A model generated the notes under the pieces. It was not told the DNA's origin. It worked only from the letters and a program-made list of their open reading frames with translations, and did not search any database. From IMG/VR virus record IMGVR_UViG_3300030673_000004, positions 186,001-250,000 of that record: 64,000 bases of DNA; one strand, written 5' to 3'. The position numbers and the translations under genes were made by a program. The stretch's first letter is position 1, and every line of letters begins with the position of its first letter. Below, piece by piece: positions 3,623 through 54,399 of this stretch.

Positions 3623-3952
3623 ATGTATGTTGTATACGCATCACAGGTGCTAAAATCATTTAATATACCATATATTGTGGTATCCTCATTAGGTGTAGCA
3701 CTACCTAGGCATATACTGCAGTTTACTTTGAAGGATAAGCATCTTACAGGTGATGGTACCTCCTACTGGGTTTATACCGGAATTACGTCTGTCGGACATA
3801 CTATAATCTCTGTTAAGATGCAAGGTCCCATTATACACGCGGCTGTTTGGCATAGCGGCTTAGAAGTTGGCTCTGTTGAGCTGGACACTATTACCGAGCT
3901 TCCAGAATCTTTGATAAATAAAGTATCTGGTGTGCTTAATATAATATCTTGA
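3623..3952 (+). CDS. hypothetical protein
   Basis: ORF; SQVLKSFNIPYIVVS resembles the shared motif. Confidence 0.55.
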   Translation: MYVVYASQVLKSFNIPYIVVSSLGVALPRHILQFTLKDKHLTGDGTSYWVYTGITSVGHTIISVKMQGPIIHAAVWHSGLEVGSVELDTITELPESLINKVSGVLNIIS

Positions 3953-4700: not shown

Positions 4701-6845
4701 ATGCCTTCATTTGTAAAAGTTGGAGACGCTCCTAGTCAGAATTACTTTGGCACCAATATGATGTCAACAGCCCCTATGGCTGTTGCTAAGTCTGGCAAGC
4801 GCTCTGCATCAAATCTTGGGTATACAGGCACAGCTCAAGCTGATGTCATGTTCAATACAGATAGATACGCACCAAACGTAGAGTCCTTGGAGCGTGAAAG
4901 TCTTTTAGATGATATTACACCTAAAACTGATTATGCCCAAGCACAGCTATTCAACAGAATCTATCGTGATGATTCTGTAGCGGGTCAGGGCACGGATATG
5001 ATTGCTACCCTTCCCTGGTCAGATATGACCTTGTCCGGTATTGATGATCCAGCAATCATGCGCATCTATGAAGAAACCGTAGAGCAGTTGGATCCTGTTC
5101 AGTTGATGCCTGAGATAACACGCGAGTTTCTTAAGTTTGGACGCCACTCATCTACTTTGCTATTTGATGAGGATAATGGAACATTCTTTGATATGTTCGC
5201 ACATGATCCGCAGTTCTTAGAGATCACTCCTATTCCTATTCGTGGCTGGGATCCTAAGATTGATTGGGTTTGTGCTCCTGATATGCGAAAGTTCCTTGAG
5301 TCCAAGGATGACCGTGATAAAGCCGCTAAAGGCAGCTTGCCAGATAACCTACGCAGGGCTCTTCTTACAGGTAAGGCTGCTTTAGATCCAGCAACAACCT
5401 TGTATGTACCTCGTCGTGTTAATACCTATGATCATAAAGGTACATCTATATATTTTCGTATCTTACCGTATTATGCTATTGAAAAGCATTTACAGGCAGG
5501 TACTATTACAATGGCCCGCCGTCGTATTCGTTCTATTCTGCACGCCTCTGTAGGTATTGATAACGTGTGGGAACCCACGATGGACGAGTTGGATGAAGTC
5601 CAACGTATTTTTGTTCAGACAGAAGAGGATCCCACTGGTGCTGTTGTTGTTACTCGTAATGGTATAACGGTATCCGAATACCGTAATGGTGGTGACTTTT
5701 GGAAGTTGTCGGAGGAACAAGATTCTCTGCGTGCTGCAAAGCTTGCCGCTATGGGCTTATCTGACACCTTCTTGACTGGGGAAGCTAGCTATACAACAAC
5801 GGAAGCTACACTGTCCGTGTTCATGGAGAGCATTAAAGTCATGCGCTCCTATATTGCACAGAAGGTCTGGGAGCATACGATCTTTGATAGATTAGCTCGT
5901 GCTCATCAGTTTCTGCGCCGTACACCTGCTGAACTATCACACCATGTTCGTACCACAGCATCCATGTCCTTTGAAGATGCTATGGATATTCCACGTAACA
6001 GTTTATTGCTGCCTACGATTCACTGGAACAAAAATCTATCGCCTGAGTCGGATACTTCTTACATTGATATTTTGGAGAAGATAGAGCAGCATGGGGTGCC
6101 TATTTCTCTGAAGACATGGGCATCTGCTGGTGGCTTAGACCTGTCTTCTTTGATGGAGCAGTTGCCAGAAGATGCTAAGCTTCGTGGGCAAATTGACAAG
6201 CTGCATCCTGAAGAGGGTGAGGGTGGCGAAGGCGGTGGGAGCGGAGGTGGCGACTTTGGTGGAGCATTTAGTTCTACTGTTGCTACGCCTTCTACATACT
6301 TCTGGCAGCCTGCTATTAGATCTGTAGCTTATGCCTCTGGGAATATGTCCGCTGATCAACCTGTCATGGATTTAACACCGTCTGAGTGGGCTTCTGTTGT
6401 CAGCTATGTAACCAAAGACAACCGTCGCATGGGCATCCTAAAGGATAACGCCGCATTGTCTCGGTACCTGGGTGAGCGGTTTTCTGAGGCTACAGCAAAG
6501 ATAGAAACATCAAAGTTTCTTTTGAATAGACTTGGTTTCGCTACTGTTCCTGTTGCTCGTGAGACTGTTGAACGTCTTGCGAATCTATATGAGACACAAT
6601 CAAAAGTAGCACAGGCTAGTCATAATAAGGATCTTATTAGATTGGTTCGTGCTGAGATTATCAAACTTACCGATATATACAACCGTTCTTCTCAACAGAC
6701 GAGTTTAGGGTCGTCTTCTTCGGGTCCCAGTGCTCGTATAACTGATGGTTTTGCTTCTGTGAGCAATAATATGGTTAGTGCTAGCCAGGGACCCAAGATC
6801 AAGGATGAGACCTCCAAGCTTACTATGTATTCCGGATTGGGCTAG
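4701..6845 (+). CDS. probable portal protein with C-terminal extension
   Basis: GTSIYFRIL..YAIEK......MARRR.RSILHASVG and AAMGLSDTFLTGEASY resemble T4 gp20-type portals; Gly-rich linker before the extension. Confidence 0.6.
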   Translation: MPSFVKVGDAPSQNYFGTNMMSTAPMAVAKSGKRSASNLGYTGTAQADVMFNTDRYAPNVESLERESLLDDITPKTDYAQAQLFNRIYRDDSVAGQGTDMIATLPWSDMTLSGIDDPAIMRIYEETVEQLDPVQLMPEITREFLKFGRHSSTLLFDEDNGTFFDMFAHDPQFLEITPIPIRGWDPKIDWVCAPDMRKFLESKDDRDKAAKGSLPDNLRRALLTGKAALDPATTLYVPRRVNTYDHKGTSIYFRILPYYAIEKHLQAGTITMARRRIRSILHASVGIDNVWEPTMDELDEVQRIFVQTEEDPTGAVVVTRNGITVSEYRNGGDFWKLSEEQDSLRAAKLAAMGLSDTFLTGEASYTTTEATLSVFMESIKVMRSYIAQKVWEHTIFDRLARAHQFLRRTPAELSHHVRTTASMSFEDAMDIPRNSLLLPTIHWNKNLSPESDTSYIDILEKIEQHGVPISLKTWASAGGLDLSSLMEQLPEDAKLRGQIDKLHPEEGEGGEGGGSGGGDFGGAFSSTVATPSTYFWQPAIRSVAYASGNMSADQPVMDLTPSEWASVVSYVTKDNRRMGILKDNAALSRYLGERFSEATAKIETSKFLLNRLGFATVPVARETVERLANLYETQSKVAQASHNKDLIRLVRAEIIKLTDIYNRSSQQTSLGSSSSGPSARITDGFASVSNNMVSASQGPKIKDETSKLTMYSGLG

Positions 6846-10166: not shown

Positions 10167-11950
10167 ATAAGATCAAAGCTACCACAGGCGTTGCTCCTGA
10201 AGATTATCACGACACCGTGTTTCAAATAATCGACGGAGAAAGGCCGAAACATAAGTATGTACAAGCAATCAAGATCTACGGGGACGACGATGTCGCAGAT
10301 ACCCCTGAGAGACGAGGCTTGGTTCAAACTCGTGTGCTTCTTGATCTTGATGATCCACAGGCAGAAGGATCTGAAGTATGTCTCTCACCAAAAGATTTGA
10401 AGCGTCCTGATATCTTTCCAACTTTGATACACGACCCAAAGATGTGGCGTGCTTCCTATGATACACCTATTCCTGAATTAGCTGTTGCTGCTTGGGATAT
10501 GGTAGAGCGTAACATATTTAATATAGCTACTGCTGGTATCGGTCAGCAGTTTAATCTAGAACGTGATGCTAATAAAGTTCTGAATGCTATTAAAGTTATG
10601 CTTAGTGGTTACTTTGGTGGATTTGTTCTTATACAATTACTTGGGTGGATTAAGAAGAAGCTGTTTGAGCGTATTCATCAACTAAATCCGCCTACTCCTG
10701 TATCTGTTGATTCTAAATTAGCCGACATTCGTATACACGGTTTGAAAGGTGTATACGATTCACGGTCATTCAATCGTTTTTATACAGGAGCTTCTTCTGA
10801 TAATCCTGACGAGTTGGCTTCTGTTAATGTATTAGATGCTTTATCCAGAACATTTCCTCATAGACCTGTAGCGTTGGTATCTATACTTCGTGACGGTAAG
10901 ATTGAGCATCAGCCTCTCTTCCGACATGACTTCGAGATGGCTAAAGACGTGTTTGTTGATTCTCAGGTAAGTATTAAGTCTGTTGTTGCTTTAGCTATAT
11001 CTATGAACATGGATAAGGCTGATGATCACGATATTAAAGTTATACTTGAGTTTTGTGCAGATAAGTCGAAGTATACTGCCTCTGTGTCTGTAGGTGGTGG
11101 CAAGATTGATGTGTCTGATGTAAAATGTGAAAAGGCAGGTACCCTGTCACCTCACCCTGTTATTGAGACTCGTGGCACTCTGCGTGATGACTTGCTATCA
11201 AATTTTATTGGTAGTATTAAATCTCATGGGTTGTTTGCTCATAAAAGTCACACTAAGTCTGCTATTCTTCCTTTCCATGTCGCTCGTAGCCTTGTAGCGC
11301 ACCTAGATACCTGTGATTTGAAGTATAAGCTGCAGACAAATTCAGCTAGTGATACGGGGATTGAGATTATGGTGCTGGACCCTGCGGGCGAGCATCCACG
11401 TCTCATCGGGTACATAACAGATAAATCTATGGGTACTCCTGAGACTTTGGATAACTTCGCACCCTCTGATAAATTCAAGTCACTGGATGTTGATTCCATA
11501 TTACAAGGTGAGTCACCTGTGATTGTCTTGGGAACTAATCCGTTGACCTCCTTCGCCGCTGCAACAAAGCGGGACGAGTATCTGAGTCAGTTTATAAAAG
11601 ATAGTTTAGAACATAACCGTAGAGTTAAATATACATCTACCATATTTGGTGTTAAGGATATATTTATTACTACGGATGTATCAACATTAAGTGAACCTTT
11701 GTCTGATCGTAAAGTTGTTGTTGATTTCCCTATAGATCTACCTAAAGGGTATGACTTTGAGAACTTCAAAACAACTGCTGTTGGTACGTTTACATCAAGA
11801 ACTCCTTCTTCTATTCAAATGGCTCTTGTCGATGGCAAGAATGTTGGCGGAACACCAACAGTAAACATTGTGTATTCCTTTAAGGGTTCCGATGTTGACT
11901 TAGCTATTGAACTTCTTTATACAGTGCTTCAGCTTTCAATCCATCAATGA
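10163..11950 (+). CDS. hypothetical protein
   Basis: 595-aa ORF. Confidence 0.75.
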   Translation: MNKIKATTGVAPEDYHDTVFQIIDGERPKHKYVQAIKIYGDDDVADTPERRGLVQTRVLLDLDDPQAEGSEVCLSPKDLKRPDIFPTLIHDPKMWRASYDTPIPELAVAAWDMVERNIFNIATAGIGQQFNLERDANKVLNAIKVMLSGYFGGFVLIQLLGWIKKKLFERIHQLNPPTPVSVDSKLADIRIHGLKGVYDSRSFNRFYTGASSDNPDELASVNVLDALSRTFPHRPVALVSILRDGKIEHQPLFRHDFEMAKDVFVDSQVSIKSVVALAISMNMDKADDHDIKVILEFCADKSKYTASVSVGGGKIDVSDVKCEKAGTLSPHPVIETRGTLRDDLLSNFIGSIKSHGLFAHKSHTKSAILPFHVARSLVAHLDTCDLKYKLQTNSASDTGIEIMVLDPAGEHPRLIGYITDKSMGTPETLDNFAPSDKFKSLDVDSILQGESPVIVLGTNPLTSFAAATKRDEYLSQFIKDSLEHNRRVKYTSTIFGVKDIFITTDVSTLSEPLSDRKVVVDFPIDLPKGYDFENFKTTAVGTFTSRTPSSIQMALVDGKNVGGTPTVNIVYSFKGSDVDLAIELLYTVLQLSIHQ

Positions 11951-40713: not shown

Positions 40714-43641
40714 ATGACTGACGCTAATTCATCTAGAGTTCGCCAAACATGGCAACGTGGGGAGCAGGCCGAGTTCCGTTTCTCTTTTGTTAACTCTTCC
40801 GGTGATGCTTTAGTTCCTTTGGATGCTAATAAATATCCGAATTATGCTTTTGTATCCCCATCGGGTCTTCAGATACAGACAGGGACAGCTCAAGCTTATG
40901 GCACTCCTGGGCAATATCGTGTTTTATGGACAATTCCTCAAGATAGTGAGTTATCTAATGATGAGATGTCCTGGCAGTTACAAGTAAACTTTGTTACGGC
41001 GCGCCGTTCTCAATTAACACATACCTTTGATTTCTTTGTTGTAGACAAGCAGGTAACAGCTACAGGTCGTAAAGATGTTGTAAACTTAGCTATTCAAGGA
41101 TCACCTCATCGTTTGTTTTGGCGTGGTGATTTTGATCCGGCGGAGATTACATTGGAGTGTTATGCCTCTCCCTACGCAGATAACTCTGATCTAGCCCCAA
41201 TTCCACATGCTGCTGCTCTAAATAAATCAGCTCTGACTAAAGTGATAGATGGTGATAGTATAGTTTACTATTATGAGATCCCCTCATCTGCGTTTACTTT
41301 ATGGGATCCTTTGAACAATCTGTATACTGGTCTGTGGTCTGTTCGTGAGACATCTGTATCTGAACTCCAAGTGGAGTATGATCAGTTTCGTGTCATCAAG
41401 AAGCAGATGGTTCAGTACATACAGTCTATTCGTTTCATGGTGGATAGATTCCAGCATAGGTTAGGTACCCCTCAGCATATTAGTGATGGAGATCTCTGCG
41501 AGGCTCTTACGGAGGGCTTGGGCCTGTTTAACGGTTGGTTCCCTGTATCTAACTACAACTGGACTGACTTTCCTATGCAGTGCTCTACATACTGGATTAT
41601 GCTTTCTACTTGGTGGATGCTGAATTCTCAACATATGCTCCAATCACAGCTCGCATTTTCTTTCTGTGTCACTGAGGATACTTATGTGTCTACAAATCGG
41701 GGTCTTGTGCAAGCTAAGTATTTGCGGCCAGGTGCCCTGGAGCATGATGTTCTAAAACTAGTAGCATCTATTGCTTTTCACCCAGATAGAGAAGCTGTTC
41801 TTACTGGTATTATAGCTAATTCTTCTGACATAAAAGACCAGAAATTAGGGTTATCTGAATTAGTTGCTTCTACAGCACCGGAAGTAGCAAGTAATTCAAT
41901 TTTGAGCATGTTTTCCAACTATGAGTTATCTCAGTTTGCCACTCATGATGAGTGGCGTCGTATCTTAATTGATTGTTCAGATGCTTTGTTTACATTTATT
42001 AATGAAACTCTTCTTGCAAATACCATAATCAGCACAAATGCTAAGTTTGACACAAAATTTAAGCTGCTTACACCTTATGGTAGAGATGTTCCTACTTGTG
42101 TTTGGGACCTTGGTGCAAAGCCTGTCTATAGATTAGAAACAGCGCACGGGTACTCTTTGAAAGCAACAGGAAATCACCCGGTATTAGTTTTAGATAAAGA
42201 ACTTAATGTACAAAACAAGAACTTAGCCGATATCTCTGTGGGTGATGTTGTCGCTATATCTAAGCGTCATGACAGTGCTGACGAGGATTGGGATATTGAT
42301 TTATCGTTTTTGGTGGATGCTGTTAATAGATACACAATTAAAGGTGCTAAAAATTACGAACTTCCCAGAAAAATGACTCCTGCCTTAGCTCGGGTACTCG
42401 GCTACATTACGAGTGAGGGCTATATAAATACTGAGGGGATTATATCTTTCTGTAATATAAATCAAATTTTATTAGATGACTACGTTAAAAACTTCACGGA
42501 ATGCTTTGGTGTTGCTCCGAAGTATAAAGGATTTCAGATAAGTAGTGCTGGAAATAAAGTACACTACTACGAAGAATCAAATCGTAAAATAGCCATGTTT
42601 TTGATTGGGTGCGGAGAGCAATTTAAGCAGGCACCTGACAAAGAAATTCCGTGGTCTATCATGGCAGCACCTCGTAGGTTAGCTCGTGAATTTATTCAAG
42701 CCTTTTTTGAGGGAGATGGGTCTTATACATCATATGATACGTCTAAGCAAAAAGGTAAAACTTTTATGAGCTTTGCATCCTCTAGTACAAAGATGCTAGA
42801 TCAATTTCAAAGCCTGCTGCTTAGATTTGGGATTATTACATCTAAGCATAGATATGCGTCAGCACAAGTTCCGCAAATACATGTACCAAGTTCTGCTATT
42901 GATATCTATGCAGATACCATAGGTTTTTGGTATAAGGGTAGAGATCATAAGCCGCGTGTTCGTTACTATGAGCAAGTAGAAGCATACCCTGAGTTTGTTG
43001 GTACTTATATTAAGTCTCTTTTTTCCGGAGCTAATAAGGGTTGGCATACAGATTCAGAAACAGGTAAAAAGTTTAGAGTGTATTCTGGTTTGACTTTGAA
43101 CGCAACTCAAGCTATTTTTGATAGCCGGTGTCCTACACAGAAAAATCTATTATTCTATTTAGAACAGCGTACAGAGTTGTTAGCTAAGTTAAAGCCTGAC
43201 GTTCTAAAGAAACTTAAGTATTTAGCTGATCTTGACTTTCAGTGGGAATCTGTACACAGTATAGATACACTGGAAACAGAAGAATGCGTTATAGACCCTA
43301 CTCTTCCAGATCGTGATACGGACTTAGCACACCACTTCTATGCTAATGGATTTGTTACCCATAACTCTGGCCAAGCCGTCACGCTAGATTATGATCAGAC
43401 AGGTGCAATTGACTCTGCTATTCAGCGTTTGAGCGAGTGGTTGAATGCACATATTACTCCACAAAAGATTATGATTAGCCGTCAGCGTTCTGGTGTGGGT
43501 AGTTTGGGCATTCGTACTCAGCGTGCTTTTGGTGCATACAACCGTGTTCTCCGGTATGACTCGGCTCGTGGTATTGATTCCAACGTTGGGTTTGAAGGTG
43601 TTCTTAATGCAGCCGCGACTTACGGTATCTTCCTGCCTTAA
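40714..43641 (+). CDS. intein-containing probable virion (neck/adaptor-like) protein; ~408 aa after splicing
   Basis: beta-sandwich-like N-terminus plus helical IRFMVDR...ISDGDL..AL..GL..FN region; exteins rejoin as AFSF/SGQAVTLDYD. Confidence 0.65.
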   Translation: MTDANSSRVRQTWQRGEQAEFRFSFVNSSGDALVPLDANKYPNYAFVSPSGLQIQTGTAQAYGTPGQYRVLWTIPQDSELSNDEMSWQLQVNFVTARRSQLTHTFDFFVVDKQVTATGRKDVVNLAIQGSPHRLFWRGDFDPAEITLECYASPYADNSDLAPIPHAAALNKSALTKVIDGDSIVYYYEIPSSAFTLWDPLNNLYTGLWSVRETSVSELQVEYDQFRVIKKQMVQYIQSIRFMVDRFQHRLGTPQHISDGDLCEALTEGLGLFNGWFPVSNYNWTDFPMQCSTYWIMLSTWWMLNSQHMLQSQLAFSFCVTEDTYVSTNRGLVQAKYLRPGALEHDVLKLVASIAFHPDREAVLTGIIANSSDIKDQKLGLSELVASTAPEVASNSILSMFSNYELSQFATHDEWRRILIDCSDALFTFINETLLANTIISTNAKFDTKFKLLTPYGRDVPTCVWDLGAKPVYRLETAHGYSLKATGNHPVLVLDKELNVQNKNLADISVGDVVAISKRHDSADEDWDIDLSFLVDAVNRYTIKGAKNYELPRKMTPALARVLGYITSEGYINTEGIISFCNINQILLDDYVKNFTECFGVAPKYKGFQISSAGNKVHYYEESNRKIAMFLIGCGEQFKQAPDKEIPWSIMAAPRRLAREFIQAFFEGDGSYTSYDTSKQKGKTFMSFASSSTKMLDQFQSLLLRFGIITSKHRYASAQVPQIHVPSSAIDIYADTIGFWYKGRDHKPRVRYYEQVEAYPEFVGTYIKSLFSGANKGWHTDSETGKKFRVYSGLTLNATQAIFDSRCPTQKNLLFYLEQRTELLAKLKPDVLKKLKYLADLDFQWESVHSIDTLETEECVIDPTLPDRDTDLAHHFYANGFVTHNSGQAVTLDYDQTGAIDSAIQRLSEWLNAHITPQKIMISRQRSGVGSLGIRTQRAFGAYNRVLRYDSARGIDSNVGFEGVLNAAATYGIFLP
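41665..43365 (+). mobile_element. intein with LAGLIDADG homing endonuclease (C318-N884, 567 aa)
   Basis: block A CVTEDTYV, block B LKATGNHPV, LARVLGYITSEG and FIQAFFEGDGS, block G FYANGFVTHN/S. Confidence 0.93.
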
Positions 43642-48840: not shown

Positions 48841-49308
48841 ATGCATATGCCAAAATATCTGACCATCTATATAGACATGGATGATACTCTGTTTGACTTT
48901 ACAGGGGCCTACCGTCAAGCTCTAGAGGATAATCCGGCACAACCCTTTCCTCAGTCACAGATAGGATTCTTTCTGGGACTTCGACCGATCACTGGAGCGC
49001 TACAGGCTTATGACACTCTTAGAGAGCAAGGCCACCGTGTCTTGTTCTTAACTGCTCCATCTGTGCGTAATCCCATGTGCTACACAGAAAAGCGGATGAG
49101 CATAGAGCGTCACTTCGGCTTTGATGCTTGTACAGACCTAATAATTGCTCACGACAAAAGCTTGTTACGCGGGGACATTCTTGTGGATGATAAATGCGAC
49201 TCTAATAAGCAGACCGAGTTCCATGGGTATCTCCTAAACTTCGGTTCGTTGCAGTACCCAGACTGGACTAGTGTACTGCGGGGGATCTCGGGGATCGCTA
49301 ACCTGTAG
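48841..49308 (+). CDS. HAD-family 5'(3')-deoxyribonucleotidase (NT5C-like)
   Basis: IYIDMDDTL, FLTAPS, EKR, DKSLLRGDILVDD. Confidence 0.9.
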   Translation: MHMPKYLTIYIDMDDTLFDFTGAYRQALEDNPAQPFPQSQIGFFLGLRPITGALQAYDTLREQGHRVLFLTAPSVRNPMCYTEKRMSIERHFGFDACTDLIIAHDKSLLRGDILVDDKCDSNKQTEFHGYLLNFGSLQYPDWTSVLRGISGIANL

Positions 49309-49347
49309 TTCCACGTCAATGCCGGTAGGTTAGCGATGACTATTTTT
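49294..49347 (+). terminator. hairpin insulating the CRISPR locus from the upstream gene
   Basis: ATCGCTAACCT(49294-49304) and AGGTTAGCGAT(49327-49337), then a T-rich run. Confidence 0.5.
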
Positions 49348-49366: not shown

Positions 49367-49468
49367 TTGACATTTTTGGCTTTGCTTGTATATTTCGTAA
49401 TACGAAGCAGTTGGTTAGCGAATTACCTCCTGTTCGCTCTTTGACAGTGTGTGTTTGTACCTAGTGCG
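49367..49468 (+). promoter_or_regulatory. CRISPR promoter and leader
   Basis: TTGACA(49367-49372)-N16-TATATT(49389-49394), next to the most conserved repeats. Confidence 0.7.
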
Positions 49469-50013
49469 GTAGCACTTTGTACCCATGTGTGAATTGAAAC
49501 AAGTATGACCATGCATGCCGACAGCTTGAGGCGGGTAGCACTTTGTACCCATGTGTGAATTGAAACCGAGTATACCCTCGATCCCACCCAAGCTCCTTCG
49601 TAGCACTTTGTACCCATGTGTGAATTGAAACGAGGTATTGTCTTAATAAGGCATTAGCTAATGGGTAGCACTTTGTACCCATGTGTGAATTGAAACTCGC
49701 TGACAGGCTTAACGACGTTGGATCGCCCGTAGCATTTTGTACCCATGTGTGAATTGAAACTTCTCGACAGCCGCTCCGACAATTCCTGACAAGTAGCACT
49801 TTGCATCCCTGTGTGACTTGAAACAACGCTAGGTCGTGCGAGAGGCTTTGGCCAGAGTAGCATTTTGTACCCATGTGTGAATTGAAACATGGCGGCAGAT
49901 TAGTTGGCGGAGAAATTTGGGTAGTACTTTGTACCCCTGTGTGGATTGAAACTCTTACAGTTCGCATATCTGGATTGACATCCAGGAGCTTGTACCCATG
50001 TGTGAATTGAAAC
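49469..50013 (+). CRISPR. CRISPR array, 9 repeats and 8 spacers (32-34 bp)
   Basis: repeat GTAGCACTTTGTACCCATGTGTGAATTGAAAC at 49469, 49535, 49600, 49665 (identical), 49729, 49793, 49857, 49921 (variants) and 49985 (3-nt deletion). Confidence 0.97.
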
Positions 50014-50064
50014 CTTGTACCATTGGGCAGTCGCCGTGATTTTGTATTTGACTAAAATTTAAGC

Positions 50065-50092
50065 TTGACAAACAAATTTTTTGAACTATATT
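50065..50092 (+). promoter_or_regulatory. sigma70-like promoter for the ncRNA
   Basis: TTGACA(50065-50070)-N16-TATATT(50087-50092). Confidence 0.7.
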
Positions 50093-50098
50093 TTGTTC

Positions 50099-50280
50099 TA
50101 CAAGTCGAGCACAGCGACTCTAAATCAATGCCGGGGGGTATTTCAGGTCCTCGTTAACAGTCCGAAGAAGAACTCACTGGAGGGCTTCGCTGCTAGGGTA
50201 ACCTAGCGAAACGGCTGCCAAATTCACACACAAGTCCCTGCCTAGGTGCGAAATAAAACCTAGGCAGGGATCTTTTTGTT
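50099..50280 (+). ncRNA. putative tracrRNA/scaffold RNA
   Basis: non-coding stretch between promoter and terminator; AATTCACACA(50221-50230) complements repeat TGTGTGAATT; TTTCA(50141-50145) complements repeat TGAAA; internal GCTAGG-GTAA-CCTAGC hairpin. Confidence 0.7.
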
Positions 50281-50282
50281 TT
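50235..50282 (+). terminator. intrinsic terminator of the ncRNA
   Basis: perfect 13-bp stem TCCCTGCCTAGGT/ACCTAGGCAGGGA followed by TCTTTTTGTTTT. Confidence 0.85.
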
Positions 50283-50308
50283 ACCCTATTTGAACTTGGA
50301 GATGAACG

Positions 50309-52225
50309 TTGGCTATTCGCAAAAAGACTCCAATCTTGGGCGCTGCTCCGGGTGATGTGCGAACGACTAAGTCCTATAAGTTTGAGCTGTATCCAACAAA
50401 AGATCAGAGAGACAAGTTGTTTACTTTTCTTTGGGCAACTCGGTGCATGTACAATGATGCGCTTGAATGGTTGTTTACGGATAAGATGCTGTTTGATATG
50501 GGTGACATTGACGTGTGGCTAGAGCATCGCGTACTGGCTCTTCTTAGTGATACTGAGAAGAAACAAGCTATTCTTACTTTGGAGTTGGAAGAGCTGCAAA
50601 AACGGCCAGGCACACAATGTAAACAAAATAAGATTCTGGATAGCCTAGAGAAGATGCGTGGCAAACATGATACGTTTGTTTTAGGTTTAGCAAAAATGCG
50701 CACAGAATATGAGAAAAAGATCTGGCCACGTCTCTCTAGAGAGGACATGACTGTTCTTGCTGGTGCTATTCGGCGCTTGAATAAGTCACACCCTGCTTAT
50801 GACGCAAGTTTGGGAATTCCAGCGACTACATTTAATTCGACAGTAGCCAAACGCCTTAGCCAAGCACAGAAAAGCATTTACACGTCAGATCGTCTTTCTA
50901 AGAAAGACGGCAACTTTCTTGTTTCTCGTAGACGTGAATCTACTAAAACACACATTGTTACGTACACAGATCCGGAATCTGTTCAAAAGGTAGAGAACTT
51001 CCCGAATTTCAGATCTCGTACCTCTAGCTTTATTTTAGAGGCGCAGAAACCTTCCGCATTTATCAATGGTAAACTAGGTAATCTTAAGATTACCCCTGCA
51101 CTTACTGTTCAATTTTGTGCTTATGTTGACATTCTCACGGGATCAGCCAAAGAAATTACACAGGCTATCTCAGCTAGGCGTGTTATTGGGATGTCCGTAG
51201 GTCAACAGATTACTGTAGCAGTTGATGGTACTGGGCGTTGGTGGACTAGTATTACTATTGATACCAACCATAGTCCTGTGTTGTATCCTGTTGACATTAA
51301 TAAAACTATGGCACTTGATTTTCGTCCAGCCGCTATTACAACTAGTACCGGATTCCGGATGATGCGGAGTCTTGATGCTCTTCGTTCTGTAACTAGCTAT
51401 CCTAATTGTGCCGCTCTGGCTAAGAAGTATGAAAAGAATCAAAACGCTATTGTCATGAAGCAGCGTGAGGTTTCTCGTAAGTATGAGCTGCATAAGCGAG
51501 CTAGCCAGACGTTCAAGACTACACACGTTTGTCCTATTTGTGGCGCAGTTGCCTCAGACGAAGCTGTTGCTGATCTTAACACTTTTAAGTGTTCTTGTGG
51601 GTTCTCCGTGAGGATGAAATCTAAGAATCATCGTAAAGCCAAGTTTGAGCTATCTATGTTGCATGCTCGTAGTGCTGGTATACTGACAAACTTAAGACGG
51701 CACATTGTGCATTCCTGGGTAGCATCAGAAGCAACTACATTTGTCATTCAAGATATTCCTTTGAACGAAGGTTTCAAGGCAAAGGCAAAGACAAAGAAAG
51801 ATGGGGAGAAGGACAAAGATAAGAAGCCTCGCAGATGGCGTGGCTGCGCTATCCGACGGCGCAATATCAACAGGTTCACACATCAGCTAGCTGCTGGAAC
51901 ATTGCGTAGCATGCTTGTTGCGTCTGCTGCTACTATGCAGAAGAACGTGATCGTGGTCTCTTCTGACTATGATCCTCTGCACACCTGTAGCTGCGGTCAT
52001 GTTATTTCTACTGGTGCTACAATGTGTGATGATGTTGTTGCTAATGCACCTACCCGTCTACTGTATATTCCGTTTGATCACCCAAAACTTGTTCTTGGAG
52101 CTAAGTCAGGAACGGATGCTTTACGCAGATTTGGTGAAGCATTAACTCAGAAAGAAGCCCGTAAGCAAGCTAAGTTACTGCGAAAGGCTGCGTTGACTTC
52201 TGGCCAGGGGATTGCTGTTGATTAA
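50309..52225 (+). CDS. TnpB/Cas12f-like type V effector, RuvC-II Glu replaced by Gln
   Basis: KSYKFELYPTKDQ...TRCMYNDAL (IS605 OrfB-like N-terminus); RuvC-I MALD337; SKNHRKAK..L..LH helix; RuvC-II FVIQ481D; candidate RuvC-III D574/D575; GGAGA RBS. Confidence 0.85.
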   Translation: MAIRKKTPILGAAPGDVRTTKSYKFELYPTKDQRDKLFTFLWATRCMYNDALEWLFTDKMLFDMGDIDVWLEHRVLALLSDTEKKQAILTLELEELQKRPGTQCKQNKILDSLEKMRGKHDTFVLGLAKMRTEYEKKIWPRLSREDMTVLAGAIRRLNKSHPAYDASLGIPATTFNSTVAKRLSQAQKSIYTSDRLSKKDGNFLVSRRRESTKTHIVTYTDPESVQKVENFPNFRSRTSSFILEAQKPSAFINGKLGNLKITPALTVQFCAYVDILTGSAKEITQAISARRVIGMSVGQQITVAVDGTGRWWTSITIDTNHSPVLYPVDINKTMALDFRPAAITTSTGFRMMRSLDALRSVTSYPNCAALAKKYEKNQNAIVMKQREVSRKYELHKRASQTFKTTHVCPICGAVASDEAVADLNTFKCSCGFSVRMKSKNHRKAKFELSMLHARSAGILTNLRRHIVHSWVASEATTFVIQDIPLNEGFKAKAKTKKDGEKDKDKKPRRWRGCAIRRRNINRFTHQLAAGTLRSMLVASAATMQKNVIVVSSDYDPLHTCSCGHVISTGATMCDDVVANAPTRLLYIPFDHPKLVLGAKSGTDALRRFGEALTQKEARKQAKLLRKAALTSGQGIAVD

Positions 52226-52226
52226 A

Positions 52227-54399
52227 GTGAAAAAGCTTCGCAAGTATCAGGAAGAGACACTTACGTGGGCTTTCCATGTACTGGCTAATCCGCAGCGTCC
52301 ACATTTGTTGATTGGGCAGCCACCGGGTGCAGGAAAGTCTATGCAGGCCCATTTGATTAGTCGGTTTGCTCTGGAATGTCCTAGTCTAGGGATCAAGAAA
52401 ATTCTGGTACTGACACCATTGATAGCAATCCGTTTTGGGTTTGCACGTGATCGGGACTACGGCGTAACGTATACGTCTGACTCGTTTAGCTGGCTTCAGA
52501 ACGGTGGCGTTCGGCCACTAGACTTTCAGACAACAGATGGTGCTCTTCTAGCTATGCTGCAGACAGATCGTGTGGGTGCCTATATTGCATGTCACGCATC
52601 TTTGGCTAACGCAAAAGCTGAAGATGCTCATGCTTTTGAGCAGTTGGACGACTGCTCAGATTTACTTATTGTAGTTGATGAAGCACATCACCTTAATGCT
52701 GAATAACCTGACGAGTGTCGTACAGTGTGCTGTAGATAAAGGTGCTCGAATGCTGCTACTGACAGCAACGCCGTTTGTATCTACCGGTTCGTGGGAGTTC
52801 ATCTTAAAGAATAAGACAAAGTCTCGTATACGTCCGCTTAGTCAGCATATTGAAGAAGGCTTTGCACCTCGCCTGGAAAATGAGATCATCTATAGCGATA
52901 TCTGGCCTATGGAGAACGGACTCCCTTCGCCTGAGTTTGTGGCACGTAAAACGATTGAGACGTTTTTAGCAAATGATCGAGTCAAGAGTCTTGTTGTTGT
53001 ACCTGCTACACCGTCATGCCGGGCTTGCGGTACAACGGAGGAATACGTCGATAAGATCATAGACGAGTGCTACAAACTTGTGCCACGTACAGATATTTCT
53101 TTGTTGAATACTCTGGGCGATTCTAAGACAGATATTATCACCAAAGAGTGCCGTGGTGATACCTATCACGATATTCAATTCACGCCAACCACAGGCAAAT
53201 ACCGTGAGGGTGTGGATGATCCCAGGCTAGCCTGTATTCAATACTTTGTTCGTCCGAAGTCCTCTATTCTTAGCGTTCAGATTCCGGGTAGGACTCTTCG
53301 CGAGAAACCTGAAGGATATCTGCCTGTGCAGTTTAGATTTAAGTCTAAACAGATATTCCATACTTCTTCGGCTGCTGGCGCCCTGATAGAATTTTCCTGT
53401 GATGTTCTAAAGTACATTCTCCGAACAGAGAATCCTTTAGCTGCTGCTACTCTGCCACCAATCAAAGCTATGATCGGCGAACTGCGTATGCGCAGGCGGC
53501 AAGCAGACAATTCAGGTGATATTAAATTAGCACAAAGTTATGCTGAATTTGCGGATGCCTTGGAAGATGACGCTGAAACAACTATGTGTGAGGCTCTTGC
53601 CGACTTAGATGCTCAAGTTACGCTGGCCTATGAGACTCAGCAAGGAGTAACTCTTCCTAAGCTAATTCAGCAGTATGGAATGGACTCAAACGTTGTTAAA
53701 TTGGCTATGTATCAACAGCTTAAGAATCATCCTGATAAGTTATTGGAGCACATGGAGTCTATCATTGAACGGCGTACACGAAATCACAAAGGCGGAAAGC
53801 ATAAGCCGGGAAGTACGCCGTCATTTGAGATTGCCGACTTTTACCTTCATATGCTTGCAGAGCAGTATGCTGATGAAGAAATAGATCAGTTTGTGACAAC
53901 TATTGATAGTCGCGTTTTGACCGAGTGGTCTGATCGCTGGGAGAAACTTAGAGACAGGACAGATCTGGAAAAAGCTGACGGTCTAGTTCAGGCTTTCAGC
54001 ACGGGTAGCCTTCGTCGTGACGATCATATCAACTACCCATCGTTTGAAGAGTTTCGGCTGCGTAATCTGCTCAGTACGGTGCTGCCCGCAGTTAAACGTC
54101 CCAGTTTAGAGGCTCGTGCGCTGTTAGATGCTGCTGGGTTGTCTAGTCGCATTTTTGCTGATAACTGGAATGATCCTCTTGTTTGTAACAATGGTACCTT
54201 GCTAACTCTTCAGCGTTTTGTACCTTTGGCATCTTGGGTGAAGGCGCATGGAAGGCTACCCCAGATTTCTTCTGATCTAGAAGAGAGGTCCGCCTATAAA
54301 TTCTACAGAATCTATAAGGACAAAATGACTGTAGTTGCTTCTCAGCACACTGCTAGTATCATACAGGAACTACATATAGGAGAAGTCTTGGATGCCTAA
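52227..54399 (+). CDS. SF2 (DExH, Res-like) helicase split by a frameshift at ~52704
   Basis: LRKYQ, GQPPGAGKS, VLTP and IVVDEAHH in ORF 52212-52706; LTATP, EGVDDP, QIPGRTLR and HA-like HGRLP in ORF 52675-54399. Confidence 0.85.

Follow-up and report, generated by a model that had tools for sequence, protein, structure and literature searches.

A putative tracrRNA with two predicted contacts to type I-C-like CRISPR repeats beside a TnpB/Cas12-family gene of a jumbo phage

Introduction

In the omega-RNA of the ISDra2 TnpB protein, nucleotides (nt) -2 to -6 form a pseudoknot, and in the single guide RNA (sgRNA) of Cas12f the pseudoknot is the repeat:anti-repeat duplex R:AR-1 and stem 5 is the duplex R:AR-2 (PMC10097598). 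Phage-borne miniature type V effectors encoded beside CRISPR arrays are already known (10.1101/2025.01.20.633832; PMC12607003). Here, we describe a locus in a 64-kb window, the whole stretch of DNA that was analysed, which comes from a ~375-kb contig of a jumbo phage (IMG/VR UViG_3300030673_000004); other Joint Genome Institute (JGI) samples contained the same locus. The plus strand carries, in this order, a hairpin, a leader promoter, a CRISPR array, a second promoter, a non-coding RNA (ncRNA) and a gene for a TnpB/Cas12-like protein of 638 amino acids (Table 1). Comparison with homologous loci suggests, with a probability of roughly 80%, that the ncRNA is a trans-activating CRISPR RNA (tracrRNA) acting as an omega-RNA-derived scaffold for the adjacent protein. 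Because two sites of contact between the ncRNA and the repeat co-vary with the repeat, the array would belong to a type V-like system that is apparently undescribed and probably nuclease-dead.

The ncRNA resembles the Cas12f tracrRNA and the ISDra2 omega-RNA in having a multi-stem scaffold, a predicted pre-guide pseudoknot with a 5'-proximal segment, an adjacent repeat:anti-repeat stem and a partner protein of the TnpB fold, and it differs from both in lacking sequence or Rfam similarity to them, in the length of its anti-repeat, which is 7–22 bp depending on the relative, and in its pairing with an I-C-like repeat. Unlike the omega-RNAs of IS200/IS605 elements, it lies 5' of its gene, has its own promoter and does not overlap the 3' end of the gene; no TnpA was called within 10 kb on either side of the locus. 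The best profile matches of the effector family are to Cas12n (V-U4), Cas12f and V-U proteins, with the window protein weakly resembling Cas12f and Cas12u2, and the size of 500–640 amino acids is also similar. The window protein differs from them in an extra zinc finger, in a RuvC site that lacks its catalytic Glu and its third Asp, and in scores below the cut-offs. Cas12n is tracrRNA-dependent.

Cas12k, TldR and dCas12f-sigmaE share with the present system a TnpB/Cas12 fold, a mutated RuvC site and conserved partner genes (10.1101/2023.11.30.569447; PMC13472631). Their partners are Tn7 genes, flagellin loci and a sigma factor, whereas those found here are a superfamily 2 (SF2) helicase and a methyltransferase-fold protein, and unlike them the present locus is borne by a jumbo phage and has a full multi-spacer array together with a separate putative tracrRNA. 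The Cas12p 'hacker' (10.1101/2025.01.20.633832) and the virus-borne TnpB-like genes beside arrays (PMC12607003) are similar in setting, being rare phage Cas12 proteins of 500–700 amino acids with CRISPR RNA (crRNA) and tracrRNA and without adaptation genes. Cas12p is an active nuclease (10.1101/2025.01.20.633832), unlike the predicted DNA binder of the window, and no sequence similarity was detectable between the window effector and the Cas12p chains of the PDB, the likeness being at the level of the fold only. Neither of these two studies describes such a tracrRNA family or an I-C-like repeat. The array resembles type I-C arrays (PMC8406640; PMC5071653) in its 32-nt repeats, their start and end motifs, the 32–34-nt spacers and, in two relatives (L013 and L157, see below), the hairpin position, and differs from them in having no I-C cas genes nearby, in the loss of the hairpin from the window repeat and in the co-evolution of its repeats with an anti-repeat RNA. 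The libraries and literature searched contained no match for the RNA family, for the pairing with an I-C-like repeat, for the RuvC-substituted clade or for the helicase/methyltransferase neighbourhood.

Relatives of the locus and the conserved fold of the ncRNA

The effector is a member of a rare and very small family: among 1.84 billion representative proteins, searched exhaustively with HMMER, it has nine relatives. A homologous ncRNA stands beside a homologous effector in six further loci, obtained from the contigs of the HMMER hits and from a DNA-pattern scan of metagenomes, which contributed one new locus, L013. The window locus is referred to as W and the relatives as L005, L006 (with which L007 is identical in sequence), L008, L009, L013 and L157. 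The array–promoter–ncRNA–effector order of W recurs in L005, L006, L008, L013 and L157, and differs in L009, where the ncRNA and the effector precede a leader with a single repeat. DNA-pattern scans of IMG/VR revealed no additional ncRNA/effector locus, and a loose-pattern scan of a genome collection gave chance matches only and no new member. A covariance model (R1) recovered training members only and missed L006, and word-indexed protein searches with the effector returned its own sequence and one fragment.

Covariation among these loci supports three predicted helices, P1, P2 and P3, showing that the ncRNA is a conserved structured RNA. The P1 sequence of W is replaced by AGAUG/CAUCU in L013 and L009 and by GGAGG/CCUCC in L006, and P3 occurs as CAGC/GCUG, CAUC/GAUG or CAAU/AUUG around one or two variable hairpins, so that both helices show full compensatory swaps between loci. 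P2 is of the form CGGGG../..CCUCG with a loop of 8–10 nt, and 97.6% of its alignment cells are paired. In the core alignment as a whole, 87.5% of the cells are paired and the covariation has a score of 0.40; sliding the partners lowers these values to 38–50% and 0.03–0.13, and none of 500 shuffles reaches 0.40. A GC(C/U)AAA linker follows P3 on its 3' side, and a variable segment follows the linker. The comparison of homologous loci for compensatory changes, which the initial annotation had proposed, has thus yielded such changes in P1 and P3 as well as in the loop and the repeat described below, and the internal hairpins that it had pointed out (AGTCG/CGACT at 50103–50119 and GCTAGGG/CCTAGC at 50191–50208) fold as it said.

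In single-sequence minimum free energy (MFE) folds of the L013 (1669–1838, minus strand) and L009 (1813–1979) ncRNAs, the anti-repeat AAUCCAC pairs with GUGGAUU of the P2 5' strand and loop. This fold, which replaces the consensus P2, may represent a self-masked state or a coincidence of repeat-like sequence.

The ncRNA also has predicted boundaries. Its promoter is of the same type as that of the array leader, and counterpart promoters with TTGACA or TTGACT occupy the same place in L005, L157, L006 and L009. At the other end, 50235–50247 pairs with 50258–50270 without a mismatch, and CUUUUUGUUUU follows; this terminator is absent from the output of the terminator scan because its 10-nt loop exceeds the 8-nt limit of the scan. 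The only open reading frame (ORF) across the ncRNA is a 41-codon TTG frame (50081–50206), and the related loci have indels in this region that are not multiples of three. The promoter, the perfect 13-bp terminator and the lack of a plausible ORF are all as the initial annotation had described them. The plus-strand fold is better than that of shuffled sequences (z = -3.8; 0 of 200 as good), and a search of Rfam gave nothing at the gathering score and only noise at E-values up to 10. A strong terminator ends the ncRNA in W, L006, L008, L009 and L013, and in L005 and L157 the ncRNA reads straight into the start codon of the effector without a terminator. From these features, we infer that the ncRNA is transcribed from its own promoter and ends at the intrinsic terminator.

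The 3' anti-repeat

The 10-nt segment AATTCACACA, which lies 3' of the last helix of the scaffold and 5' of the terminator, matches the reverse complement of repeat nt 18–27 exactly in seven of the nine repeats of the W array, and occurs only once in the window outside the array. In the MFE fold, 50221–50229 are single-stranded and 50230 joins an extended terminator stem; in the centroid fold, all ten nucleotides are unpaired. Complementarity to the cognate repeat is found in all seven loci, with contiguous Watson–Crick pairs numbering 10 in W, 22 in L005, 12 in L157, 10 in L013, 10 in L009, 7 in L008 and 8 in L006, where the value is a manual reading and the matrix region gave 7. Non-cognate combinations of ncRNA and repeat give 4–9 pairs, the repeats themselves being related. 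In W, L005, L157, L013 and L009, the cognate repeat forms the longest helix and the non-cognate repeats form at most 8 pairs; in the two remaining loci a foreign repeat pairs further than the cognate one: in L008, 7 pairs are formed with the cognate repeat and 8 with the first repeat of L157, and in L006 the count is 8 for the cognate repeat and 9 for those of L157 and L013. The duplex begins beside the 3' end of the repeat and reaches a variable distance in the 5' direction, W having a short version. The pairing of this segment with the repeat, predicted in the initial annotation from W only, therefore recurs in cognate form in the six relatives, and its conservation, on which that annotation had staked the proposal, amounts to 7–22 cognate pairs in seven of seven loci.

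The P2 loop as a second contact

The P2 loop contains the segment UUUCAG, which is the proposed pseudoknot partner of repeat nt 26–31 (UUGAAA). These nucleotides are at positions -2 to -7 from the spacer, and the register is identical in all seven loci and agrees with that of ISDra2. All L157 repeats have the 3' end TTGTAAC, with a loop of UUACAG, and those of L006 have TTGAAGG, with a loop of CUUUAA; both are compensatory changes. The L157 loop forms six pairs with its own repeat, three with repeats ending in TTGAAAC and four with the L008 repeat. Both complementarity and covariation are shown by these loci for the predicted split pseudoknot between the P2 loop and the repeat. The distant TTTCA (50141–50145) that had been suggested to pair with the 3' end of the repeat is thus part of the P2 loop and, in L157 and L006, varies in step with the repeat. 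A further contact that had been suggested, between the adjacent GGGTA and TACCC of the repeat, does not hold: GGGTA is present at 50136–50140 and lies within the P2 stem, and the equivalent positions of the other loci have no complementarity to their repeats, so that this pairing is not conserved.

These observations lead to the following model. The array would be transcribed from the leader promoter to give 5'-repeat-spacer-3' units on the same strand, and the ncRNA would be transcribed separately, from its own sigma-70-type promoter to its intrinsic terminator, and fold into P1–P3. Each repeat would then be captured twice: the 3' anti-repeat may form a 10-bp duplex with repeat nt 18–27, and the P2 loop may pair with repeat nt 26/27–31 directly 5' of the spacer, producing a split pseudoknot. 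Together, the two contacts would rebuild the guide–pseudoknot–stem core that is recognised by TnpB and Cas12f proteins. The crRNA:tracrRNA duplex with the split pseudoknot would assemble on the effector, and the complex would bind spacer-complementary DNA and leave it uncut, by which a target of a competitor or of the host could be silenced or marked. The helicase and the methyltransferase-fold protein encoded downstream may take part in this process, for which the support is weak. The proposal that a two-part anti-repeat tracrRNA ties the array to the effector is borne out to the extent that the ncRNA is conserved beside the effector in six loci and that its helices and contacts covary.

The effector

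The effector has a TnpB/Cas12 fold. Pfam finds an OrfB_IS605 helix-turn-helix domain in it, and its hidden Markov model (HMM) matches in NCBIfam and PADLOC, all weak, are to TnpB, Cas12f and V-U models. The top Foldseek matches are ISFba1 TnpB, Cas12m, Cas12f, Cas-lambda, Cas12p and TranC, with E-values from 5e-11 to 1e-7. The scores are below the curated cut-offs: 22.7 compared with 26.3 for Pfam Cas12f1-like_TNB, 26.4 compared with 100 bits for NCBIfam guided_TnpB, and 15 compared with 350 for c2c8; the PADLOC Cas12f score is 27.9 bits. With these thresholds unreached and an incomplete triad, the protein cannot be assigned to Cas12f, Cas12k or Cas12n. The initial description of the RNA as Cas12f/Cas12k-style hence applies to the layout of pseudoknot and stem and does not extend to membership of the effector in these families.

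An extra zinc finger, CxxC...CxC, is present at residues 408–430, and the TNB zinc finger is degenerate, being one Cys short. Profile alignment to three TnpB structures, with a protein alignment of eight rows, places the RuvC triad of W at Asp-337, Gln-481 in place of the catalytic Glu, and Val-577 in place of the third Asp (Asp-361 of ISDra2). The position of the catalytic Glu is occupied by Gln in P0002, P0003, P0004 and P0005, which are the closest to W, by Thr in P0008 and by Lys in P0006; the full triads of P0003 and P0008 are His, Gln, Asp and His, Thr, Gln, respectively. In the phage clade of W, two of the three RuvC positions are substituted, Glu by Gln and Asp by Val, Ala, Ser or Thr. 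Since these two are catalytic positions, the effector of this clade is probably a binder of DNA and not a cutter. The shorter relatives P0007 of L009 and the L013 effector retain an intact D-E-D triad, and nearly all of P0007 is covered by its matches to the Cas12u4 and Cas12f models, at about 1e-33.

In L157 (530–2357), the effector is broken into three ORFs of 178, 59 and 338 amino acids and the array repeats have decayed; the genes for the helicase and the methyltransferase-fold protein, like the ncRNA, have stayed intact.

The array, its leader and its repeats

The W repeat is identical to a Legionella type I-C repeat at 20 of 32 positions and has the same 3' end, ATTGAAAC. The repeats of the family match Xanthomonas and Legionella I-C repeats at 19–24 of 32 positions (L008 and L006, whose repeats are partial, are scored over 31), have the I-C length, start with GTCGC or GTAGC and end in GTG(A/G)ATTGAAAC, and are type I-C-like in sequence and length. 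The final ATTGAAAC is present in W, L005 and L013, and is replaced by TTGTAAC in L157, GTTGAAAC in L008 and TTGAAGG in L006. The stable hairpin of I-C repeats (nt 3–21) is lost from the W repeat (-2.3 kcal/mol, compared with -12 to -14 kcal/mol for I-C repeats) and from L005 and L008, and its exact geometry is kept in L013 and L157. No cas1, cas2, cas4 or I-C cas gene is among the genes called within 10 kb on either side of the locus.

The array has its leader on the left, a polarity which fits the last repeat at the right end, degenerate in its first 8 nt only, and the trailer start common to W, L005 and L157. This start of about 13 nt (CTWGTACCATTGR; 50014–50026 in W, L005:872–888, L157:346–362) has no second site within the window, and all other spacers differ. 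Shared after a degenerate repeat by three divergent phages, it could represent the oldest spacer, passed on by descent, or else act as a conserved seed against a fixed target.

The hairpin 5' of the leader promoter has a third copy of its arm, GGTTAGCGA, within the leader (49413–49421). The GGTTAGCGA 9-mer occurs four times in the window compared with 0.26 expected, and the arrangement of hairpin, TTGACA promoter and leader GGTTAGCGA is also found before the L006 arrays (4861–4988 and 10639–10766) and in L009 (3500–3541), with a hairpin spacing of N23–25. This three-part leader element may act as an attenuator or as the site of a regulator.

The organisation of the arrays varies in some relatives. 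L006 has two arrays (5036–5390 and 10815–11170) with identical leaders, one on each side of the ncRNA–effector–helicase–methyltransferase module, and its ncRNA promoter is copied after the second array with other sequence downstream of the copy. In L009 (3500–3760), the array has shrunk to a leader and one repeat (3667–3698) 3' of the effector with D-E-D, and the sequence 3' of this repeat leads into the ribosome-binding site of the next gene. Two other viral contigs of IMG/VR, L169 (8376–8934) and L170 (5268–5823), contain arrays of canonical I-C-type hairpin repeats, GTCGCACCC[A/T]CACGGGTGCGTGAATTGAAAC; the proteins encoded next to these arrays (711–846, 723–733 and about 350 amino acids) have no Pfam or PADLOC match.

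Table 1. Positions of the features of the locus, numbered from the first nucleotide of the window.
Feature	Positions	Strand	Description
Hairpin	49294–49336	+	ATCGCTAACC-N23-GGTTAGCGAT, just 5' of the array leader promoter
Array leader promoter	49367–49394	+	TTGACA-16 nt-TATATT, 11/12 matches
CRISPR array	49469–50013	+	9 repeats of 32 nt, 8 spacers of 29–34 nt
Trailer unit after last repeat	50014–50046	+	first ~13 nt CTTGTACCATTGG
ncRNA promoter	50065–50092	+	TTGACA-16 nt-TATATT, 11/12 matches
ncRNA, putative tracrRNA-type scaffold	50100–50283	+	~181–184 nt
Helix P1	50103–50119	+	AGUCG/CGACU
Helix P2	50132–50153	+	CGGGGG/UCCUCG, 10-nt loop
Loop segment UUUCAG (R:AR-1)	50141–50146	+	proposed pseudoknot partner of repeat nt 26–31 (UUGAAA)
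Helix P3	50158–50217	+	CAG.UCC/GGCUG, around hairpins 50167–50188 and 50191–50208
Anti-repeat (R:AR-2)	50221–50230	+	AATTCACACA, 10 nt, predicted to pair with repeat nt 18–27
Intrinsic terminator	50235–50283	+	perfect 13-bp stem, 10-nt loop, U-rich tail
TnpB/Cas12-family effector, 638 amino acids	50309–52225	+	TTG start, GGAG 7 nt upstream
SF2 (ResIII/DEAH) helicase, split	52212–54399	+	ORFs 52212–52706 and 52675–54399
Class I S-adenosylmethionine (SAM)-methyltransferase-fold protein, 215 amino acids	54392–55039	+	conserved after effector/helicase in five loci

Downstream genes and phage backbone

The helicase gene is present in four loci and is intact in L005, L006 and L157 (705–731 amino acids). 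In W, it is split by a +1 frameshift directly 3' of the DEAHH box (about 52690–52700), which is not at a homopolymer and is identical in three independent assemblies. Homologues of the methyltransferase-fold protein are encoded in L005 (5251–5916), L006 (9955–10617), L157 (4474–5148) and L008 (1631–2224) and are 36–45% identical across loci, being better conserved than the effector. Its assignment is based on a weak match to Pfam Methyltransf_31 and on structural matches in the Atlas with template modelling (TM) scores of 0.6–0.75, and the family of which it is a member is mostly viral. Both proteins may be linked to the function of the effector, a connection that is weakly supported. They were rejected as obligate partners: the helicase is frameshifted beside an intact effector in W, and the effector is broken beside intact neighbours in L157.

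A 975-codon ORF with intein-splicing and LAGLIDADG domains (window 40714–43641) is 5' of the module in W and 3' of it in L005 and L157, so that the module has shifted relative to the phage backbone.

Assessment of the model and of alternative explanations

Several observations weigh against the assignment of the ncRNA as the tracrRNA of the adjacent effector. The anti-repeat of W is only 10 bp long, and perfect anti-repeat matches of at least 10 nt occur across the window at the chance rate (four independent matches compared with 2.8 expected). The covariation is that of seven RNA sequences, about six of them independent; the changes in loop and repeat come from two lineages, and G-U pairs soften the L006 case. 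On the protein side, the AlphaFold model of the effector is mediocre, with a predicted local distance difference test (pLDDT) score of 65 and low TM scores, about 0.3, in its structural matches, and the alignment has eight rows only. The locus shows erosion, comprising the frameshifted helicase, the Cys-deficient TNB zinc finger, the broken L157 effector and two mutated repeats in the W array. Searches of the phage collection, the window and the related loci gave no target for any spacer. Since the repeats are I-C-like and some relatives keep the hairpin, host Cascade could also use the arrays.

The last point bears on an improbable but partly compatible explanation, in which the ncRNA is an antisense regulator or RNA anti-CRISPR directed against host I-C crRNAs or, in a 'hacker' version, enables the phage protein through its anti-repeat to load host I-C crRNAs, with the mini-array serviced by host Cascade. 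The I-C-like length of the repeats with their 5' GTCGC and 3' GTG(A/G)ATTGAAAC, the exact I-C hairpin geometry in L013 and L157, and the lack of adaptation genes within 10 kb on either side would all suit it, as would the fact that the stretch of the repeat from which the I-C 5' handle arises is among its paired parts. However, both the position of the ncRNA and its co-variation tie it to the TnpB-like gene and to the repeat variants of the phage itself, and the variants that it tracks include repeats without a hairpin (W, L005 and L008) and repeats ending in TTGTAAC or TTGAAGG, unlike both compared I-C repeats, which end in ATTGAAAC. A simple antisense RNA would need no large conserved P1–P3 scaffold, and to our knowledge the known RNA anti-CRISPRs are sense-orientation repeat mimics. 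The initial annotation had linked the array to the effector rather than only to a host Cascade; the link to the effector is supported, and the I-C-like repeats may also be used by host Cascade. Coincidence would explain the data differently, the ncRNA being either some unrelated small RNA of the phage or the 5' leader of the mRNA for the effector. It does reach the start codon of the effector in L005 and L157, and besides the chance-rate matches, the RNAduplex value for repeat and ncRNA (-19.5) is unexceptional: many other 181-nt tiles of the window score better, and because this tile scan leaves the ncRNA unremarkable, duplex energy alone is uninformative. The position of the match tells against coincidence, a 10-mer match on the correct strand of a 180-nt segment having a chance of ~0.4%. 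The anti-repeat thus appears non-random by position, and more strongly so by the cognate anti-repeats at the same position in six related loci. The comparative data already contradict coincidence, with cognate complementarity at the same position in seven of seven loci despite differing repeats and with compensatory changes in loop and repeat, and we give it hardly any credence.

A very doubtful alternative is that the ncRNA is an unsplit, omega-RNA-like single guide whose variable 3' segment directs the dead effector to repeat DNA, for example for regulation of the array, with no crRNA partners. A scaffold followed by a variable 3' end is indeed the organisation of a TnpB omega-RNA, and in L005 and L157 the 3' end has a guide-like length of 22–24 nt and no terminator. 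However, the linker GC(C/U)AAA, where a pseudoknot within the same RNA would be expected, cannot pair with the loop, and the loop co-varies with the 3' end of the repeat instead; in W, L008 and L006, a complementarity of 7–10 nt followed by a terminator hairpin is too short for a guide. The tracrRNA assignment can also be extended to an evolutionary scenario that we consider unlikely in its full form. The effector would be a RuvC-dead, RNA-guided DNA binder that a jumbo-phage lineage derived from a Cas12f/n-like nuclease that already used a tracrRNA with I-C-derived repeats, and would have teamed up with the helicase and the methyltransferase as a new type V subtype with a recruited module; its arrays could be filled by host I-C adaptation, and its tracrRNA could capture host I-C crRNAs. 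Apparently active D-E-D relatives occur in L009 and L013.

Implications

If the ncRNA is the tracrRNA of the adjacent effector, a phage array that looks orphaned and has repeats of a host type (I-C-like) can belong with a TnpB-derived effector encoded next to it, by means of a dedicated tracrRNA. The seven loci would then form a natural series across the split of an omega-RNA into tracrRNA and crRNA, with anti-repeats of 7–22 bp, with and without a terminator, and with effectors that are apparently active or RuvC-dead. The covarying contact between loop and repeat would provide a design rule for a single guide. If binding without cutting is true, the effector would be a compact (about 590–640 amino acids), natural, programmable DNA binder in a candidate partnership with a helicase and a methyltransferase.

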